Assembly: GCF_036588685.1 (NCBI RefSeq) | Contig: NC_086374.1 | Location: 63,116,001-63,180,000 of the forward strand | Direction of reading: 5' to 3' | Source of the DNA: Mytilus trossulus | Taxonomy: Eukaryota | Length of the DNA stretch: 64,000 nt | Shown here: positions 8,374-23,881 of the stretch, piece by piece | Layout: every line of letters starts with the position of its first letter | How positions within the stretch are numbered: the first letter of the stretch is position 1 | Notes under the pieces: generated by a model | Seen by the model: the letters and a program-made list of their open reading frames with translations, nothing else | The model's database searches: none | Told to the model about the DNA's origin: nothing | Made by a program: the position numbers and the translations under genes

Positions 8374-9741
8374 TTTGCTTTGATAACGTAATCTATTAAA
8401 GAAAAAAAAAAGTATTAACAAGTTCCATCCTAAATTCACAGATTTACAGTAAAAACAAAAGCGTTCAGAGCTTATGGTTCATTAATAATTTGATAAGCAT
8501 ACTTTATAAGTCCCATTTTAATTTGTATGTGGTGTCCCAGTCAGGAGCCTGTAATTCATCTGTTGTTGTATGTTTATGTAATTCATATTTGTTTTAATCC
8601 TTAAGGTTGCACTTTGTAAATACAGCTGTTTCTCAAAACACGCCTTTTTTGGGAAGATCTTGAATATTCATAGAAAATTAATTTTGTTTACATACTGGTT
8701 CCCAGTTATCATGGTTATGCTCTCTGTGTTCCATCTCACAGAGACATAACTTAGGAATGTTACCAGTTAATATACATGTGCATATATTGTTTAAATTGAA
8801 ATATGTGGTAACCTTTCATTTGAGGTAGGGGTAGTTAAGAAAATTATTGTTAGTTTAAACTCTGAGAAGTTCAGGGCATATAAACGTTGAACATATGCCG
8901 CACAGCCCTATATTTTGACCTTTGAAAAAAATTGTGGTGCATATGATCTTTCAATTCTAGGATAAGATTTTTTTCAAAACTTCATAGTAAAAGTGGTACA
9001 GTTTTAGCAGTAAAAAGAGTTCCTGTGGGAAATTGCATTGTCAATTTTTACAGAAATGCTATATCATTTAGTTTAAGTATCAATCCTGTCACTGGTTATA
9101 AGCAATTGTTAAGTATTTTATCAATTACAATTAAGATATTACAACATCATTCTATTGTTGTTTTATCATAAGTTTGAATCTTTAAGCTGTTATCTTTATA
9201 CTAATTTGCAGGAGAAGAAAAGTTTTCTTACTAAGAGTACAGAGATTGCATCAACCAGATGCTTGAAGTTTTTCATTGTTGAAGACATTATCTGATCATA
9301 TCTGTGGTGCTTGGTAACAAGTCTAATTCTTGTTCAATTCAATACATTTTTTTTTTAGATTTCATTGCTTCAATTTATTAATAATTTCAAAATGAAATAC
9401 TCTTTACATTAGACTACAAAGAAATCAAGAATTTCAAAGGTGACATTCAATACACATAATTCGGAAATTTCAAAGTTAAAAGAGACACACATAGGACTAA
9501 AAGTGATTCAAATAGCTCTCTTTTTTCTTCTGGTCAGGTGAGCTAATAAAAGCTATCACTTCTAAATAAAACATAAATATTTAACCCCACTCTTCCCCCT
9601 TTGTGATAGTGATTGTAATTTTTTAACAAGTTCTTAAACATGGTTTGAAATTATGTCATTTATTCTCAAAGATTCAATAGAATTTGTACAATACTTCTAT
9701 GTATAATATCCATTAAATATGTATTTATATAACCTACTTAC

Positions 9742-9803
9742 CTGAATATACAGCTGATAAACTATAAAATATATTTATAAACTTGTTATCGTTCCTGTTT
9801 TAC
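9742..9803 (-). other. Putative non-coding (5'UTR) exon, unit 1
   Basis: TTTTACAG acceptor and CAG|GTAAGT donor; homologous to 11070-11140, 12563-12643 and 16557-16611; nearest upstream candidate for the ANAPC5 acceptor at 8392. Confidence 0.6.
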
Positions 9804-10016
9804 CTGTAAAATACAAATGATGATTTAAACAAAAATACAAATTGAAAAAATATGCAGTGATTATATGCAGATGATTTAATCATGATAATAGTTTCTGCAA
9901 TATATGTTTCCTTTAAACACACACCTGAATAAACTAACACACTTGTTTTGCAAATCTTGAGACCTTTTATGTAAATATAATAAACTATAGCTATGTCATA
10001 CTACATTTCCAGCATG

Positions 10017-10023
10017 TATATAA
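10017..10023 (+). promoter_or_regulatory. TATA box (TATATAA) at -31 of structured RNA copy 1; equivalent boxes at 11356, 12848 and 16818
   Basis: Same spacing to the GGAGA start in all four copies (-31, -31, -31, -30). Confidence 0.6.
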
Positions 10024-10047
10024 TTATCATAAAATGTAATAGTTAGT

Positions 10048-10312
10048 GGAGATCTATATCCATTATGCTTGGCACTGTAAATATTATAATAGTGTTATTG
10101 GACTATTGTACGAATGTTTAATGGTCATGTCACCTTGAGATTTTCTGAGTCCTAGAAAGATTAAAGTGGCATACCTGAACAGCATGTGCTACTGAATGAT
10201 GAGTATATCTATACTCTAGCCTAGTTCCCCATACGAGTATAGATACACTTAACAAGCATTTCATCAGCAGTGAATCAGGGCTAAGAAACAGGTGGTAAAA
10301 GATCTTCGTTTT
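10048..10312 (+). ncRNA. Unassigned structured ncRNA, copy 1 (putative Pol III transcript, ~265 nt)
   Basis: GGAGATCT pairs with AGATCTTC; CCATT/GGTGG; CTTGGC/GCTAAG; four hairpins with G-U pairs on the + strand; ends GTTTT. Confidence 0.7.
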
Positions 10313-11069
10313 AATGAAAAATTTCTTAGGAATGTTTTTTTCTTTTACAATTAACAAATTATGAAATATGGTTTATAATTTTTTGGGGTGGATGATGACA
10401 GATTTATAAAAGATTTTATAATTATGTCTATTCAGTTTTACTATTAACCCTGCAACTTTTACATTCCTCAGTGTATAATTATCAAGTAATTTATTAATTA
10501 CAATACAGATATTACATCATGTCATTCTGGTCTAATCATTATGTGTTATTTTTTTATTGAATTATTTTAAATAATTTGCAGTGGAAGAAAAGATGAAATA
10601 TTTCTAATTAGAAATTCCAAGAGCCATGCACCACTCTCAGGTATTTATGCCATGTTGTAAACCCTTCTAAACAAGTATCAAGCCTTTAGCCCCCATGAGT
10701 TACATAGCTACTGACTCTTAATGTTGAGTGCTCAACTAATTAGTTTAACTCTACCATATGTGTATGTCTCTGTTAAACAACACTTGATCCTTGTCAGAGA
10801 AATGGTTGTATCTTAAAAGACTATTTGTCCTTCTGTGAATATGCTAATGATTAAAGATCTTTCATGATAACTGTTAACTTAATTACTTTTCTATCCTTAG
10901 GAACATCAATTGCCTGAGATACTGATTAGACACACATGTCTAATAGCTGAAGACAATTTCTCTTGTTGTATGTGCTGTCTCAATCACATATTCCTAACAC
11001 TTATTCTTATAGTTTATTGAATGAATGTACAACAACACTATATGTATAATATTCATATAATCTACTCAC

Positions 11070-11140
11070 ATAAATAAACAGGTGATTAAATGTATAAAAT
11101 CTATTTATAAACGTTCATTGTTATCGTTCCTGTTCAGTAC
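11070..11140 (-). other. Putative non-coding exon, unit 2
   Basis: TTTTACAG acceptor, GTGAGT donor, conserved GGAACGATAAC core. Confidence 0.55.
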
Positions 11141-11386
11141 CTGTAAAAGTAAAAAAAGCTTAAAGACAAAAATATCAATTAATTACAAATGAAGAAGTGT
11201 TTTAACAAATAGGCAATAAAATAAATCTAAAACATACATGACATATGTTTCTCTAAACATACAAAGATAAGCCAAAAACTCTGATTTTGCTAAGCATAAC
11301 ACATAATATGTAAATATAATAACTCCTAGTGATGTAAAGCTACATTTTCTGCATGTATATAATATTCATACAATGTAAATGTTAGT

Positions 11387-11711
11387 GGAGACCTAAATCC
11401 ACTATGCTTGGCACTGCTAAGGTAGTGTTATCGGATTATTGAATGAAACTCAATGATCATGCCACCTTGAGATCTCTTTCTCACCTTTGGGCCCTAAGTT
11501 GAGAAAGAGATGTTGATGTGGGATACCTGACCCACGCCTGAATGAATGCCGGTTCAGTGAAGCTATACTTTAGCCTGTTTTCCCAGCTTCTACCTGTAGA
11601 CAATAGGGAAAAATCTGGGAAACCAGGCTAGAGTGTATCTCTACACTGAACCAGCATTCATTCAGGCGTGGGTCAGGGCTAAGAAACAGGTGGGTAAAAG
11701 ATCTTCGTTTT
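11387..11711 (+). ncRNA. Unassigned structured ncRNA, copy 2 (~325 nt)
   Basis: Same scaffold. ~150-nt near-perfect hairpin 11526-11677 (CCTGACCCACGCCTGAATGAATGC / GCATTCATTCAGGCGTGGGTCAGG) and a second hairpin 11462-11520; TATA at -31; ends GTTTT. Confidence 0.75.
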
Positions 11712-12562
11712 GCAAAACTTTTGTATGTTTTTTCCCATATACCAACATATATGCTTCAGTAATGTCATTGTCAACTTCTTAACTGTATATAAGTCACAAA
11801 AACTTAATTTTTCAATTTTCCTACAGATAGAAGTGGAGTGAAATCTGATGAAGAGGAATAAAAAAAAAACAACATAAGAATTAAATTAAAATTATTCAGT
11901 TAAATCCCTATCTTTATTCTTATTTTTAAATGTAGCATTTCAATAATTTTTCACACATTATTAAATTGAGCCTCCTCAGGTCAGTTATATTTTATTTTTT
12001 AACAGCTATCACACTATATAATAGTACATCTCTTTTAGCTTTATTGAGTTGTGTGCGCTGAGATTCTTATTATTAAACATCTAGAATTTAATTTTATCCT
12101 TTTTATATAAAGACACAACTGCATGGATTGTAGAGGGAATATTCAACTTTTGTTACTTACCAATCGTGAATGATGGATTTGAATGCAAAAATGAATTGTT
12201 ATTAGATTGACAGTTTCTGATATTAGTCGGTAATTTTAATTCAGCAACATCAAAGAACATTATGACTAATCTATTGATGTACGATTGAACAAAGTAGCAT
12301 ATAAATCACATTAAAAAAAAAAATCATAAAGCTGCTTACAAAAATTACTTAATATGTACATGCATGACATGTATGCATTATAAATTAGTGAATCCTTTTA
12401 AAACATAAAGAGGACTTGTTGTCCAGGATTTTCAAACCCCCCTTTTCAATAGTGCTTCCATATTATGTACAAGATTTTTTGAACAAGATAAACATAATTA
12501 TGTCGTTTTCCTCAACAATTTAAAAGATTTCATACAACCATTCATATATATAACCTACTAAC

Positions 12563-12643
12563 CTGAATAAACAGTAGATAAATAAAATATAAATATAAAA
12601 ATCTATTTATAAAAACTTTAAACTGTTGTCGTTCCTGTTTTAC
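12563..12643 (-). other. Putative non-coding exon, unit 3
   Basis: TTTTACAG acceptor, CAG|GTTAGT donor, conserved GGAACGACAAC core. Confidence 0.55.
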
Positions 12644-12878
12644 CTGTAAAAGATAAAAATAAATGTTTTTACCCAAAAATTACAAATGAATAAATATAGA
12701 ATTGATTACATCAAGGTAATAACACAGTTTATATAACATGTTAACTTAAACATTCATATGATAAGCCTAAAAACGGATTTTGCAAAGTACTTATACCTTA
12801 TGGAAATATTCTAAACTATAGCTACAAATAACTACATTTTCTGAGGGTATATAACGTTTAGAAACTGTAAATGTTAGT

Positions 12879-13210
12879 GGAGACCTATATCCTCTATGTT
12901 TGGCACTGCGGAAGTTAGTGTTATCAGACTATTGAATGATGTTGAAAGAAAGTCAATGGTCACCCCGCCTTAATACCTTTGTCTCCACTTAGGGCACTAA
13001 GTGGAGAAAGGGGTATTGATGTGGGGTACTTGACCCACTGCTGAATGAATACTCGTTCAGTGTATCTATACTCTAGTCTGGTTTCATGTCTAGTCTCTGT
13101 ATACAACAGGGAAAAGCTAGGAAACCAGACTAGAGAATAGATTTACTAAACCAGCATGCATTCAGGAGTGTGTCAGGGCTAAGAAACAGGTGGTAAAAGA
13201 TCTCTGTTTT
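12879..13210 (+). ncRNA. Unassigned structured ncRNA, copy 3 (~332 nt)
   Basis: Same scaffold with compensatory changes (TAGTCTG/CAGACTA vs TAGCCTG/CAGGCTA in copy 2); GGAA loop in the first hairpin; TATA at -31; ends GTTTT. Confidence 0.75.
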
Positions 13211-13628
13211 GATGGATTTTTTTTTTTTTTTCAATCAATACTGGCTGCTCACATAATAACTTATGTCCATGTATTATAAATATAACAAGAGTTGCCATTG
13301 CTAGCAAGCTGCAGCCATTTCAAAAAAATTTAACAGTAAATGCACAAAAATGCATAGCTACATTTGTAAATTCATTTTTCTGTACTATTTTATATTTTTC
13401 CCCCATTTCCATGGCAACATGGGCTATTTTGAATTTTTTACATTGTTTGCCGTTTCCATGGCAATGTCAGCCATTTAGAAAAATAAAAAAAATAATGTTG
13501 CTGGTGCTACCACGCAAGTTGTCCATGATTTATACAAAACTGCTATAAAGTATTCAACTAATTCATAATGCCCAGTTTTAAAAAAAAGTTATTTTAACAA
13601 ACTTGACTTGGACTGCTTTATATATAGA

Positions 13629-14567
13629 AACTAGAGGCTCTAAAGAGCCTGTGTCGCTCACCTCGGTCTATGTGCATATAAAACAAAGGACACAAATAGA
13701 TTCATGACAAAATTGTATTTTGGTGATGGTGATGTGTTTGAAGTTCTTACTTTACTATACATTCTTGCTTCTTACAATTATATTTTATAATGAACTTTGC
13801 CCATTAGTAACAGAAAAAAATATTTGTTAAAAATTTACATAAATTTACCAAATTAATGATAATTGTTAAAAATTGACTATAAAAGGCAATAACACCTCAA
13901 GGGGTCAATTGACCATTTAGGTCATGTTGACTTATTTGTAGATCTTACTTTGCTTAACATTATTGCTGTTTACAGTTTATTGCTATCTATAATAATATTC
14001 AAGATAATAACCAAAAACGGCAAAATTTCTTTAAAAATTACCAATTGGAGGGCAGCAACCCAACAACCACTTGTTCAATTCATCTGAAAATTTTAGGGAA
14101 GATAGATATTGACTTGATTAACAATTTAACTCCTTGTCAGATTTGCTTTAAATGCTTTGGTTTCAGAGTTATAAGCCAAAATCTTCATTTTACTCCTGTT
14201 CTATTTTTAGCCGTGGTGCCAATCTTGGTTGGATAGCCAGGTCATCAGACACATTTTTTAAAACTAGATACCCCAAAGATGATTGTGGCCAAGTTTGGAT
14301 CAATTTGGCACAGTAGTTTCAGAGGAGAAGATTTTTGTAAAAGATTACTCAGATTTATGTAAAATGGTTAAACATTGACTATAAAGGGCAATAACTCCTA
14401 AAGGGGTCAACTGACCATTTCGGTCATGTTGACTTATTTGTAAATCTAACTTTGCTGAACATTATTGATGTTTACAGTTTATCTCTATTATATCTATAAT
14501 ACTATTCAAGATAATAACCAAAAACAGCAAAATTTCCTCAAAATTACCAATTCAGGGGCAACAACCA
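13629..14567. mobile_element. Interspersed repeat with an internal ~500-bp duplication (HINE/pearl-like, unclassified)
   Basis: Begins AACTAGAGGCTCTAAAGAGCCTGTGTCGCTCACC (palindrome); 13866-14070 is repeated at 14368-14567. Confidence 0.55.
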
Positions 14568-16556
14568 CGGTGTACAGCAACTTAACTATGCACGGTACAG
14601 AAGGATTTATGTGGTTAGCTATTAAACACCGTACACAACGCTTTTTTTGTAATAAAATATCGAAAAAAACATATGCATGAAAGATTTTAATGCCAATTAT
14701 TGATACAACTATACTTAGTACACACACACACAGTGGCCTTCTATCAGAAAAAGAGTTGCAGTGAATGCATTGAATGCAATCAGTAGGTTGGCAGTTATCA
14801 TTAAACATATAAATTTGGAAGTCTGAAGAAATAAATAAAAGAAAGGAAATTGTAGCAAGTCTACACTTTGACCAGTCACCTATAATGGTTTACTTTTTAC
14901 TAATTGTGACTTGAATGGAGAGTAGTCTCATTGGCACTTATATATACCACATCTTCTCACATCTATAAATAACTGAATAATAGAAGTTAAGCTATTTTAA
15001 AGTAATCTTCACAAATTCAATTATAATTTACCATTTTTGGAAAATTTTGTTAGCATCTTTAACAAATCAATAGAATTCAGCTACTCCTTTAGTTAAAACT
15101 AAATACATACAATGATATATCCCATTTGCAGATTTAACCCCCATCTTAAGCTTTAAAAAGTCATGCTTCTTGGAAATATCAAGTATAATGGAATCATATT
15201 GGATTTGCACTGAAGCCTTTATTTCTGAAGATTTTAGCAAAAAGTTACAATACATAGCCCACCTGCCTTGGATAGATAAACTATGTGCAATGCTTGCAAT
15301 TCTGATTTTAAATATTTTGAAATGAAATTTCGTGCATTACTATTGGAATAGGTTTTAAATTTGATAAAAGTACTAAAATTGCTGTTAGAGTAAGTTGGGG
15401 CCCAAAGACTGCCTAAGAAAGGGCCTGCTCCAGTCATTCAGTGATTCCCTATATACTCAACCATTTTTTTCCGACAAAAGGGGGAGCTTGGTTTCCTGGC
15501 CCACTTCAAAATCTGCTTCTGTTGCCATGATTGATCATAATTATTTTCTGTTTAGTTTCTTTATAAGGAAGTTGTTTTGTCCTGTGTTCTATAATCAGTA
15601 TAGATGTGGATCTGATATTAGTCAAGTCTTTCTCAACAGATTATTATAGTTTGCTGTTACATCACTGTCCCAGGTTAAGGGGAGGGTTTGTGGTTTTTTT
15701 TATATATAGACTAGACCGTTGGTTTTCCCGTTTGAATGGGTTTACACTAGTAATTTTGGGGCCCTTTATAGCTATAATGGTTTACTTTTTTTTTAAATTG
15801 TTATTTGGATGGAGAGTTGTCTCATTGGCACTCACACCACATCTTCCTATATCTATGTCCCATATGTGCCACATTCTGTGTGTGATGTCGAGAACCAAAT
15901 TTTAATTTTTTTTTTAAATCTATTCCATACAGTCATGTCTTCAGTTTATTATTTTGTACATAAATCAGGCGGTTAGTTTACTGTTTTGAATTTATTTCAA
16001 TTTGTCATCATGGTCATGTCAGGCACTTTTACAGCTTGCTATGTAATACTGGTTTTGCTCATTGTTGAGGACAGACTGGTGACCTGTAGCTATTAATGTT
16101 TTTCCTTATTCGGTCTCTGATCGAAATTTGTCTCATTTGAAAACATGCACAACATCTCCTCTTTATATTGACAAGGTACATGAGGTAAATATAAGTAGTG
16201 CAGCAGGTAATTTAATAAGTCATTCTTTGGACACCTGTACAGGATTATACTACAAATAAGGCTTATAAGTAGGTGTTTGAAAGTTTTAACAGTCCAGTAC
16301 TGTCACAAAATATGAAGCAGGACCAGTCTTTTGAAAATTAAACTGAAAAAATGTATAACACATCTACATCTATACTTTTTTTATGTACATTAATAACTAT
16401 ACAGAAATAAATGTTAATCCTTGTAGAACATTTTACACCATAGCCCTTAAAGCTGTATAATTATAATTAGTAACTTAATACAGTCTTTACTTTTAAATAA
16501 TTATATTACTTCCCTTAAGAATATTTCAAAACTAAAAATAAATGAAAAATACCTAC

Positions 16557-16611
16557 TTTGTAACTGACATCACTATTTTTAGAAACCAGTTATGGTTCTT
16601 TTTCTTTAAGT
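16557..16611 (-). other. Putative non-coding exon, unit 4 (divergent)
   Basis: TTTCCCTTTCAG acceptor, GTAGGT donor, GAACCATAAC core; 237 nt from the RNA copy 4 start (236-247 nt in the other units). Confidence 0.5.
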
Positions 16612-16847
16612 CTGAAAGGGAAATAATGATGTAATTAAGATGTTAAATAAAATGAAATAATAAAAAAAAATTACAAATTTGCGTGAAAGTTGCCAATAAT
16701 TCTAATCAATTGTGTTTGCATTGTAAAATCTTATCTTTAACACAGAAATTGAAAATAAATAACTGATATATGTAAATATATCTATGATTATTAGGTAATG
16801 AATAAACATTCTTCATCTATATATAACTCTATGTTGATTACATAACT

Positions 16848-17342
16848 GGAGACCTAAGTCCTCCAAGCTTGGCACAGGGCGTCCAGTGCTATTGGGTTGT
16901 AGGGGGAAACAACCATGCTCTCTTGTGGTTCTGTTGCCTGAAGTGTTATTTGACATTTAAGCAAAAGCAAAAAAGTTCATAAATGTGATGAACATGATGA
17001 AAAAGAAGAAGAAAATAAGTCATGGCAAATACAGGCTATCAACCAAAATATTTATATTTATCTATATACAGAAAAGAATCAAGCTGGAACAAAAGAATTC
17101 ATAAATTGAAATGCAAAGAAAAAATTGTCAAAAATGTCAAATACATATTCAGGTAGCTAGCCACATTAGCTCATCTCTGAATTCTGCCCTGCTCAGTGCC
17201 TATTCCTTAAGACTATCACCTTTAAATTGATAAGGTAAGTATACCAGGTAAGAACACATTTAAGGTGATAGTGTTCTGAAATTTGTACTGTTCAGTGTAT
17301 ACTTCAGAGCTAATAAGCAGGTGGTAAAAGGTCTCTGTTTTT
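16848..17342 (+). ncRNA. Unassigned structured ncRNA, copy 4 (divergent, expanded, ~495 nt)
   Basis: GAGACCT/AGGTCTC, CCTCC/GGTGG, TTGGC/GCTAA, CAC..GTG, GGTTGT/ACAACC and CTGAAGTGT/ATACTTCAG are retained. TATA at -30, T5 end, and no internal T4 over ~490 nt. Confidence 0.7.
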
Positions 17343-20895: not shown

Positions 20896-21819
20896 CTACA
20901 ATTTTTGAACTGTTTCTATGCATCTATCTTTGAAATAAATATGTCTGTCCATTTTAGGGTTATGGTCCTTCTTACAGAAGAATGAAGTCAATGCCATATT
21001 GCTTTTGTCAGCATTTTCGTCTTCATCATCATCTTCCCATTTCACAGGGGCAGCATCTTTTTCTAAAATAATGGCTGCCGTAGACCAACTAAACCTAACA
21101 AATTGTGGAAAACCGAATACATAGTCCATATTGTTTGCAAGGAAACTTTTAGTGTTAGGATCAGCTGGATAGCCTGAGCCATATTGAAGATCTTCCGTAT
21201 TTATTTCTTCTTGGAACTTCCATTTTTTGACAGCTTTATCTCTGGTGACTTTAGCACATATACTGGCTGCACTGACAATTGGGTACAAAGAATCAGCTTT
21301 CTTTGCTACTGTAATGTCAATTGATGGGAATATACCTTTAAGTTTCTCTTGGTATTTAGTTGGATCTCCCACTGTATCAACATAAACTTCAGCAATGTTA
21401 GCTCCCCTTTCAATTGCGAGAGCCACCAGCCTGATAGCACAGTCATGTGATAAAGCATTAAGGTTATATTTTGTTCTACGGAGCATGCTAGTTGATATAA
21501 AAGTAGGGGAGAGCACTTCAACCATCCATCCAATCATTTCATTGGCTTCATTTATCTTATCAAAGATGCTCTCTCTTTGATCTTCTGTCAAGGTCTTAGA
21601 ATCAGCAAATCCCATTTCTCCAAATTTCTCCTTCATGGATATTGGACTAAAACAAATTCCATAAACCATAGGACCTAGTACTGGTCCCCTTCCTGCTTCA
21701 TCAATTCCCAACCAGCATGGTTCTGACTTGACACAATCTGGCAGTGGAGATTCTAATATTAAATTTTTCATATTATCTTCTTTCTCCAACTTAATTTCCA
21801 CTTCCTCCTTAACGTCCAT
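20896..21819 (-). CDS. RNASEH2A: Ribonuclease H2 catalytic subunit A, single coding exon, 307 aa
   Basis: LGIDEAGRGPVLGPMVYG, ADSKTL, YNLNALSHD, VYVDTVG, KADSLYPIVSAASICAKVTRD, YGSGYPADP, FGFPQFVRFSW. Splice acceptor at 21860 (TTTCTCTTCAG); AATAAA at 20844-20839. Confidence 0.98.
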   Translation of the reverse strand: MDVKEEVEIKLEKEDNMKNLILESPLPDCVKSEPCWLGIDEAGRGPVLGPMVYGICFSPISMKEKFGEMGFADSKTLTEDQRESIFDKINEANEMIGWMVEVLSPTFISTSMLRRTKYNLNALSHDCAIRLVALAIERGANIAEVYVDTVGDPTKYQEKLKGIFPSIDITVAKKADSLYPIVSAASICAKVTRDKAVKKWKFQEEINTEDLQYGSGYPADPNTKSFLANNMDYVFGFPQFVRFSWSTAAIILEKDAAPVKWEDDDEDENADKSNMALTSFFCKKDHNPKMDRHIYFKDRCIETVQKL

Positions 21820-23881
21820 ATTGAACTAAATTTCTGATATCAAATAATTGTCTCCTGGATCTGAAGAGAAATCAAAATGGAAAATTTAGAACAGTGCCTC
21901 TGTTTGAATATAAATGTTTAAGCACCAGCATCACAAACAATATCCATTGATCATGTTGATGGAGTTATGTTTGTAAAAATAACATGCATGCATGACATGA
22001 TCTGTTAAAAATCTTTTTTTTTTTTATTTGAAGGAAGATTCATTCTGATTTATGTCCCTTGCTGTACATTTTACATGTACATGTAAATATGTATATTGCA
22101 AGAAAATGATATTTTAGAGCATTCACCTGTAATTTGTTTTTAATCTAAAGCCCAATTATCGTAGAGACTCAGAAATCAATACATCAAAATACTGGTATTT
22201 GAATAAATGCTATGTCCATGCAATTAACAATAATTGTGTGAGCGACAAATATACTGTAAACAGAGGCTTCCTGAACAAAACTTCCCATTTTGATTTCTAC
22301 AATAACATATATAAGTATATCACATTTCATTAGTGTTTTTTACACCAGAAATTTTAATGTTCTTTAATTATAACAATACTCATGAAATCATGATACATGT
22401 TCTACCTTAACATTTACAATATTAATTTATTGAACAGTTCAGTAATTCAGTTTGTCATAAGTATAGAACATTGTCCCATAAAATTGCATAAACATGTATC
22501 ATCCTGGTAAAAAACTTAAGGATGCTTAAAATAAATACAATGAACATCAAAAACACCATCTTATTATAAGCACCATATTACCATGATGCTAACCAGGTGC
22601 TCTGCAGGGCACAGCTTTGTATGACCGCGGAAGTCAAATCCTGAACAGTTGGGGCAATTATGGACATAACATTCAAGCTTGATACAGCCCTGAATTTGAA
22701 CAAATCTTAATCATGTTTTGAATAGTGTACTGTTAAAAAAAAAATCCTTCCTAAATAAAGTGAGATTTTGTTAATGTTTTATTTTGTGTTGAATAACACT
22801 TTATCATCATAATCATGTTTTGGTTAGTGTATTGCTATAACTTTGTTTCATTGACTTGTTTCAAAATAAAGTGAATTTATAACTACATTTTTTTTTGGTG
22901 TGTTGATTTTTTTTTTAATCATGTTTTGATTATAATATGGGGAGGAAGTCCCCAATAACAGCAGAAAAATCAATAAATTTTTTTTTTTTAAAATCGGGAA
23001 AATTTCCCAAATTTTTCATTCTACTAATGAACTCAAAATCGTTAACTTTTTTTTTCAGATCTACTACCTGTTCCGGTTTCCCAGCATTTGCGCAGATATC
23101 TGTCTTGTTTGCATGAGACTTTGATTTTTTTTATATTTATCAGTCTAGTAAAATATAAGATTGGATCTCAATACAAATTCAATTTTAATAATTGTTTGAT
23201 ATGAAAAAAACGTTACCTGATGAAAACGTTTCTTTTGTTTACATCGAATATGACGTCATAACTTAAAGAACGTCACAGCTAATTCCCTAACAACAGAACC
23301 AAAATCGGGAACGTTACGTACGGTATTTCGGTTTCTTTTATCAACATGATTGAATTAAAAAAAATAATACATACAGACTTCGTCCCCATTCACAGGTTAT
23401 GCCTGCCTCATATTAGTGTATTGTTATATTTTATTTTTCATTGTTTCGGATCTAAGGGACCAAGCTGTTAAAAACAATTATCTTTTGTGTTTTTCATTTA
23501 AAATCTTCAATGTTTTACTCATACCATGTCATACCAAGCCAATTTATACATTCAGCAATGTTCAGTTAAAGCAATTTAAAACAACAATCATGATTTTCCA
23601 ATTATTCTACTGGAATTTGAATTAAAATTGGGCGCGAACGTGTAGAGTGCGAACGGACCTTGGGTGCGAACGTGCGATGTGCGAAAGTGTATTGGGCGCG
23701 AACGGACCTGATACCTGACACTGAATACAGAATACACTGACAGGATATACTGTTTTAATTAATAGAATATTTTGAATTCAAAAAATTTGAACTGGAGCGT
23801 GCTTGATGGAGGTAAGAGGTAACTCGTTTTCATATGCTTTATATCAAATATGAAATTCAAGATATGGTAATGTGAACTTAC

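Follow-up and report, generated by a model that had tools for sequence, protein, structure and literature searches.

A cluster of four putative RNA polymerase III type-3 genes for a lineage-specific structured RNA in the mussel Mytilus trossulus

A window of 64,000 nucleotides from the genome of the mussel Mytilus trossulus (C2:63116001-63180000 of the 1.3 Gb genome) contains four homologous elements on the plus strand, which are most likely tandem duplicates of a gene whose product is a lineage-specific structured RNA absent from databases. [quoted passage not shown] The elements were found exactly where it had placed them, at 10048..10312 (copy 1, 265 nt), 11387..11711 (copy 2, 325 nt), 12879..13210 (copy 3, 332 nt), and 16848..17342 (copy 4, 495 nt). 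The evidence presented here supports their assignment to a new family within a known kind, the lineage-specific structured RNAs presumably transcribed from Pol III type-3 promoters. In the interpretation that we favor, at a probability of about one half, the four type-3 genes encode a structured RNA with a constant handle and variable arms that functions as a ribonucleoprotein scaffold.

Copies 1, 2, and 3 are 78-86% identical in their alignable parts. Copy 4 has only the upstream blocks, approximately 30 nt at the 5' end, and approximately 33 nt at the 3' end in common with the other copies. These terminal 30 and 33 nt are near-invariant across all four copies, and the arms that they enclose are variable. 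The spacing to copy 4 is wider because repeated transposon-like blocks lie at 13600-14560 and 14870-15850, between copies 3 and 4. The blocks include two tandem units of approximately 480 bp and two copies of a segment containing ggagagttgtctcattggcact.

The family is confined to this locus. When copy 2 was used as a BLAST query against the 1.3 Gb genome, the matches were restricted to the cluster. A genome-wide search with a pattern of the 5' motif, allowing at most one mismatch, matched exactly the four copies, and the control gave 0; the corresponding 3' motif pattern matched copies 1, 3, and 4 and missed copy 2, which carries an extra G. A covariance model named R1, representing the 5' core and not the full-length RNA, scored the four copies in genomic order at 83.7, 94.9, 82.0, and 71.8 bits, and its next-best candidate in the genome reached 19.8 bits. 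A dispersed repeat, either a miniature inverted-repeat transposable element or a short interspersed nuclear element, was rejected because the BLAST search, the two motif patterns, and the covariance model were all restricted to this cluster. Dispersed copies had been named in the earlier note as a reason to abandon the idea of an RNA family; as the genome holds only four clustered copies, that objection does not apply. Scans with the conserved 3' motif gave four matches in metagenome contigs, all bacterial and all attributable to chance, and none in viral contigs. Literature searches yielded no account of such an RNA in molluscs.

Reference Pol III genes of the same genome were located with Rfam models, and their upstream regions were compared with those of the four copies. 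Like the U6-class type-3 genes, all four copies have an octamer-like element with the consensus ATGYAAATAT near -78, a TATA box near -30, and a G at +1. The upstream element reads ATGTAAATAT in copy 1 (9969..9978, -79), copy 2 (11308..11317, -79), and copy 4 (16770..16779, -78), and ATGGAAATAT in copy 3 (12800..12809, -79). TATATA begins at -31 in the first three copies (10017..10022, 11356..11361, and 12848..12853); in copy 4, TATATATA occupies 16818..16825 (-30/-28), and TATATA begins at -30. These distances reproduce the 30-31 nt given before. An additional TTTGCA lies at -101 in copy 1 and at -100 in copy 3, and is lacking in copies 2 and 4. The U6 genes at two loci carry ATGCAAATAT at -78 and TATA at -30, with TTTGCA at -100 in the C10 locus only. 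The MRP gene carries ATGTAAAT at -82 and TATA at -35/-33, and TTTGCA was not seen upstream of it. The comparison with the species' own promoters, which the earlier note had proposed, thus revealed a -78-type element plus TATA in U6 and MRP genes alike, and takes the type-3 assignment beyond the generic combination of TATA and oligo-T.

The preservation of these blocks in copy 4 is selective. Over the upstream 79 nt, copy 4 is only 44-52% identical to the other copies; the 12-nt block around the octamer-like element matches copies 1 and 2 at 12 of 12 positions and copy 3 at 10 of 12, and the TATA box is intact. In this genome's vault RNA genes, boxes A and B and a TATA box are present but the -78 element is missing, so the promoter match is specific to the U6 class. 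Two further ATGTAAATAT sites in the window, at 22081 (plus strand) and 48665 (minus strand), have no TATA box or gene behind them and were dismissed as chance occurrences. The species' U6 promoter (TTTGCA at -100, ATGCAAATAT at -78, TATATA at -30) is defined by a tandem array at C10:26.48-26.51 Mb, which comprises approximately 25 near-identical U6 genes at mixed spacings of approximately 720 and 1160 bp. ATGYAAATAT at -78 with TATA at -30 provides a usable definition of a mussel U6-class promoter, which is of practical value for guide-RNA expression in bivalves and for the search for further Pol III genes.

At the other end, an oligo-T run lies one base past the closing stem P1 in every copy, as the earlier note had observed: T4 in copies 1-3 (10309..10312, 11708..11711, and 13207..13210) and T5 in copy 4 (17338..17342). 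The 1,400 nt of RNA contain two internal runs of four or more T residues, compared with 15 such runs of A, whereas flanks and spacers contain approximately 13 of each per kb. The two internal T4 runs are located at RNA position 94 in copy 1 and at RNA position 192 in copy 2. Copies 3 and 4 have none, and copy 4 has ten A-runs of at least four, in agreement with the former description. Both the oligo-T end and the internal depletion of T-runs are as expected for Pol III termination. Taken together, promoter, terminator, and T-run depletion make transcription by Pol III, from type-3 genes on the plus strand, well supported as far as signals in the sequence can indicate it.

Independent minimum free energy (MFE) folds of the four copies yielded one common architecture. 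The z-scores of the folds against dinucleotide shuffles were -4.4, -15.6, -11.0, and -4.4 for copies 1-4, and the MFE of copy 2 was -171 kcal/mol. In stem P1, the first 8 nt (GGAGAYCU) pair with the 8 nt (AGRUCUYY) that precede the final GUUUU, which forms a 3' overhang of 5 nt. A 4x4 internal loop, AWRU over UAAA, separates P1 from P2, in which CCNYY pairs with an invariant GGUGG over 5 bp. A 3x5 loop (AWG over AARCA) follows, and then the 6-bp stem P3 (YUUGGC with GCUAAK), which closes a junction. Both loops of the closing stem are A-rich and conserved. Four hairpins extend from the junction beyond P3: A (CAC..GUG), followed by a YUAUY linker, and B are short, and C and D are rod-like arms; CUGA/UCAG lies at the base of D. 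P1, P2, P3, the CAC..GUG hairpin, the UAU linker, and the CUGA..UCAG arm had all been proposed before, and the folds recovered them in all four copies.

Arms C and D vary among the copies in length and sequence but retain base pairing. In copy 1 they are short (approximately 42 and 106 nt). Copies 2 and 3 have arms of approximately 66 and 150 nt that form near-perfect long duplexes, with uninterrupted runs of 12-24 bp and totals of roughly 25 and 70 bp. Copy 4, which keeps the core, has a C arm of approximately 250 nt, including an A-rich insert of approximately 200 nt, and a D arm of approximately 134 nt; the sequences of these arms are unrelated to those of the other copies, yet the arms are paired. 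Many loops break the arms of copies 1 and 4.

The fold belongs to the plus strand. In each of the four copies, folding the plus strand gave an MFE 13.5-23 kcal/mol better than folding the minus strand. Without selection on an RNA, transitions in a helix are expected to yield G-U pairs and A-C mismatches equally. The plus-strand folds contained 52 G-U pairs and 8 A-C 1x1 mismatches, a ratio whose exact value is inflated because MFE prediction favors G-U pairs, and the minus-strand folds contained 24 G-U pairs. The use of wobble pairs as a strand indicator in the earlier note is borne out by these counts.

The RNAalifold consensus of copies 1-3 comprised 105 pairs. Across these copies, 92.9% of the cells were paired, compared with 35-42% when the partners were slid. 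Twelve pairs had changed on both sides, compared with 5.0 +/- 1.7 in shuffles, of which 1 in 500 was as high, and with at most 4 when slid. Between copies 2 and 3, seven pairs carried double changes, and pairing was kept in all seven and broken in none; of the single changes, 14 were kept via wobble and 11 were pair-breaking. Copy 4 was added to the comparison by hand. The sixth pair of P1 reads U-A, C.A, C.A, and C-G in copies 1-4, and the first and second pairs swap between G-C and G-U. In P2 the GGUGG strand is fixed and the 5' strand alternates between U and C. Three of the six basal pairs of hairpin B are compensatory, and two compensatory pairs flank CUGA/UCAG in arm D. The covariation is real, as had been proposed; for so few paralogues it is good support, not a phylogenetic test.

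The window was compared with Rfam 15, and no match was obtained at the gathering score, in accordance with the expectation that no known family would be found. At E<=10, the only matches in the window were to generic microRNA (miRNA)-precursor models; they lay on arm D and scored 22-35 bits, where the gathering scores are 58.6-119. The identities of 7SK, RNase MRP, RNase P, U6, and vault RNA were rejected because each of these RNAs has its own genes elsewhere in the genome. For 7SK (RF00100), whose model is marked by a 5' GAUC hairpin and a 3' hairpin and has no match at the locus, three genes were found on contig C7 (53-57 bits); the 7SK-like GAUC in P1 is not conserved, copies 2-4 having GACC. 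RNase MRP and RNase P, also without a match at the locus, are represented by single genes elsewhere (130 and 139 bits). 7SK, MRP, and RNase P RNAs resemble the elements in promoter class (for MRP, ATGTAAAT plus TATA) and have a comparable size range, but none of their conserved regions occurs in the elements; neither the MRP nor the RNase P model (RF00030, RF00009), whose defining regions CR-I and CR-V form the P4 pseudoknot, found a match. U6 gave 28 genome matches, 26 of them above the cut-off and mostly in the C10 array.

Vault RNAs (RF00006) are likewise Pol III products with clustered paralogues, a panhandle formed by the two ends, and a variable center. In contrast to them, the elements lack boxes A and B and have the U6-type -78 element that vault genes lack, and the vault model did not match at the locus. 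At least 19 vault RNA genes above the Rfam cut-off were found elsewhere in the genome, in clusters at C4:62.74-62.78, C1:5.66-5.69, and C2:51.65-51.75 Mb; they carry boxes A and B, are preceded by a TATA, and end in a T5 terminator. To our knowledge, there is little documentation of vault RNAs in protostomes. Telomerase RNAs made by Pol III in ciliates, plants, and Hymenoptera share with the elements a type-3 promoter, a closing stem formed by the two ends, and hairpins around a central circle. Telomerase RNA was nevertheless rejected: no 7-mer of (CCCUAA)n, as a telomere template would have, was present in any copy. Mollusc telomerase RNAs are box H/ACA RNAs (PMC8480181).

The earlier proposal of an undescribed multicopy Pol III family is strengthened by the missing Rfam match and the U6-class promoter; its further part, that the family is under selection for structure, draws on the four paralogues only. 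In animals, Pol III type-3 promoters drive U6, U6atac, 7SK, MRP, RNase P, Y RNAs, and the selenocysteine tRNA. Additions to this list are few, and most have pointed to new biology; snaR, nc886, and the Pol III telomerase RNAs are examples. The cluster is a clean candidate for a new type-3 entry in a lophotrochozoan, and its architecture suggests either a new ribonucleoprotein or a new route to small RNAs.

Sequencing runs were compared over 9950-13300 as assembled Logan contigs, which cannot reveal starts, ends, or strand. Three runs guessed to be RNA contained a spliced minus-strand mRNA with the joint 11138>12561 and GT..AG on the minus strand, so that the RNA genes sit antisense within the introns of a host gene. 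Host exons at 12643-12561 and 11138-11070 (minus strand) flank copy 2, and the mRNA continues toward approximately 16559 (minus strand), a placement made by eye from the match of an 18-letter loose end. One host mini-exon each lies approximately 250-320 nt upstream of copies 2 and 3 and apparently also of copy 4; because of the similar distance upstream of each copy, the mini-exon belongs to the duplicated unit. A paralogous block was noted at approximately 9740-9810, upstream of copy 1.

The contigs also pointed to variation in the cluster. A DNA run of another organism contained orthologues of copies 2 and 3, at approximately 86% and 93% identity. Alternative unit joints were found at 11469>13020 (with 36 other letters), 10015>12847, and 13128>11639. 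These joints indicate hybrid or missing copies in other individuals or species, so the cluster is dynamic. Such joints point to copy-number variation that may have arisen by unequal crossing-over. Among these contigs, one paralogue was approximately 86% like copies 2 and 3, with arm C replaced by 36 nt, and the order of the units was altered in others, with unit 1 running into unit 3 or unit 3 returning to unit 2.

We rank a ribonucleoprotein scaffold first among the possible functions, a small-RNA precursor second, and non-functional or decaying genes third; a decoy, a substitute for Y RNA, and a minus-strand element rank lower. As a scaffold RNA, each gene would be transcribed by Pol III from its external U6-type promoter, starting at the G of GGAGA and stopping at the T4-T5 run. 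The folds and the covariation indicate that the RNA ends would then close on each other via P1, P2, and P3. La would probably bind the U-tail, as it does on other fresh Pol III transcripts. Because sequence conservation across all four copies is limited to the closing stem with both of its A-rich loops, the linker, and hairpin A, this handle may be the recognition site for a specific protein. The arms would be selected for pairing rather than for sequence and might serve as paralogue-specific double-stranded modules, in a scaffold role modeled on that of Y or vault RNAs.

Several observations weigh against this interpretation. A recognized protein-binding motif was not found in the loops, and the RNA has no known protein partner. 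Pairing within the arms is far more perfect in copies 2 and 3 than a scaffold requires. In copies 1 and 2, Pol III could halt early at the internal T4 run, and the covariation derives from only four paralogues, three of which are close. In addition, no discrete transcript was visible among the Logan contigs of the RNA-like runs, and low-depth contigs covered spacers and ran past the predicted 3' end and through the promoter (e.g. 11597-11775, and 11297 onward). Such low-depth contigs may derive from introns of the antisense host transcript or from DNA.

The same Pol III genes might instead mainly yield small RNAs, which we consider possible but tentative. Arms C and D would then be diced into guides resembling small interfering RNAs or miRNAs, the genes would resemble natural short hairpin RNA genes, and the constant handle would be used for export and processing of guides that differ between paralogues. 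The long uninterrupted pairing in copies 2 and 3, the restriction of the weak Rfam matches to generic miRNA-precursor models on arm D, and the fast evolution of arms that keep their pairing are all consistent with such precursors. The paired 5' end and the few unpaired nucleotides at the 3' end recall the minihelix that serves as an export signal in VA RNA and pre-miRNAs. On the other hand, numerous loops interrupt the arms in copies 1 and 4, and the arms of copy 2 are unmatched elsewhere in the 1.3 Gb genome, so that no extended target was seen, although the search was blind to 20-nt matches. A more specific version, in which the genes form heritable, fast-evolving guide-RNA cassettes that combine an invariant handle with diversifying hairpins and give different guides per paralogue and, in view of the variable copy number in other individuals, per haplotype, appears doubtful.

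Another reading is that the elements are not working genes but duplicates in decay, or palindromic DNA maintained by gene conversion between the arms; the promoter blocks would then be fortuitous or vestigial, and one copy at most would give a stable RNA. That no discrete transcript was visible among the Logan contigs would be compatible with this. The internal T4 runs in copies 1 and 2, the 11 non-G-U 1x1 mismatches in copy 3, the 200-nt A-rich insert in copy 4, and the instability of the cluster, as seen in the hybrid and deleted units of other individuals or species, fit decay as well. We regard it as unlikely, because gene conversion between arms would give neither the 52:8 excess of G-U over A-C nor the depletion of T-runs, both on one strand. 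It would also not keep the promoter blocks at their exact spacing in the diverged copy 4, or an invariant closing stem.

A role as decoy or modulator, in which an abundant RNA occupies double-stranded RNA-binding proteins such as sensors, ADAR, or Dicer, is quite unlikely. Adenovirus VA RNA I, EBER, and nc886 provide the precedent. VA RNA and EBER are of viral origin, nc886 is made by mammalian cells and has a relationship to vault RNA, and VA RNA and nc886 can yield small RNAs. All of these are Pol III products whose two ends form a terminal stem, with a central junction and long duplex arms, and the elements, with their presumed Pol III origin, two-end stem, central junction, and long apical duplexes, follow the general plan of VA RNA I. 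They differ from the elements in having internal or mixed promoters and lengths of 100-170 nt, and neither sequence nor model similarity to them was found, nor similarity to any Rfam 15 family. Abundance or induction is without support, and the fact that the handle is conserved in sequence points to a specific partner, not to generic binding of double-stranded RNA.

That the RNA is a highly diverged Y RNA counterpart and partner of Ro60-like (TROVE) proteins is very unlikely. The genome has numerous TROVE frames, at six C9 loci and in exon-sized C4 matches, and the whole genome gave no match to the Rfam Y_RNA model, although the failure of a vertebrate-trained model does not prove that Y RNA is absent. 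As with the human Y genes, there are about four clustered type-3 paralogues under external promoters, whose RNAs have a variable interior, a U-tail, and ends that pair into a stem containing internal loops. The features that define Y RNAs were not found, however. The Y_RNA model (RF00019) did not match at the locus even at E<=10, and the closing stem P1-P3 lacks the Ro-binding helix of Y RNAs (GGUCCGA/UUGAC with a bulged C). Moreover, Y RNAs are 70-115 nt long with one loop, and the RNAs described here, at 265-495 nt, are 3-5 times the size of any Y RNA and have a multi-hairpin junction and long duplex arms. Hairpin A and its 3' linker (CACUGC/GUAGUG, then UUAUC) resemble the upper stem of human Y4 and Y1. 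This likeness was set aside as coincidence, since the strand order is inverted relative to Y RNA, the loop varies from copy to copy, and no match to the Y_RNA model was obtained. The TROVE loci lie on C9 at 13.85, 15.53, 25.53-25.56, 33.84-33.85, and 38.07 Mb, and the exon-sized match at C4:83.38 Mb. The frames at the six C9 loci are intronless, approximately 490-540 aa long, mostly matched in two pieces, and represent an expansion.

That the structures act on the minus strand, within introns of the pre-mRNA of the antisense host gene, is highly improbable: spliced minus-strand exons do flank copy 2, with one mini-exon per duplicated unit, but the minus-strand fold is worse in all four copies and would carry A-C mismatches, and promoter, start G, and terminator all lie on the plus strand.

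One neighboring open reading frame was tried against Pfam without a match, and the label ANAPC5 that the earlier note had given to the neighboring gene was not confirmed. At 20896-21819 on the minus strand, an intronless open reading frame of 307 aa encodes a full Ribonuclease HII domain (Pfam E 3.8e-49) and is RNASEH2A-like.

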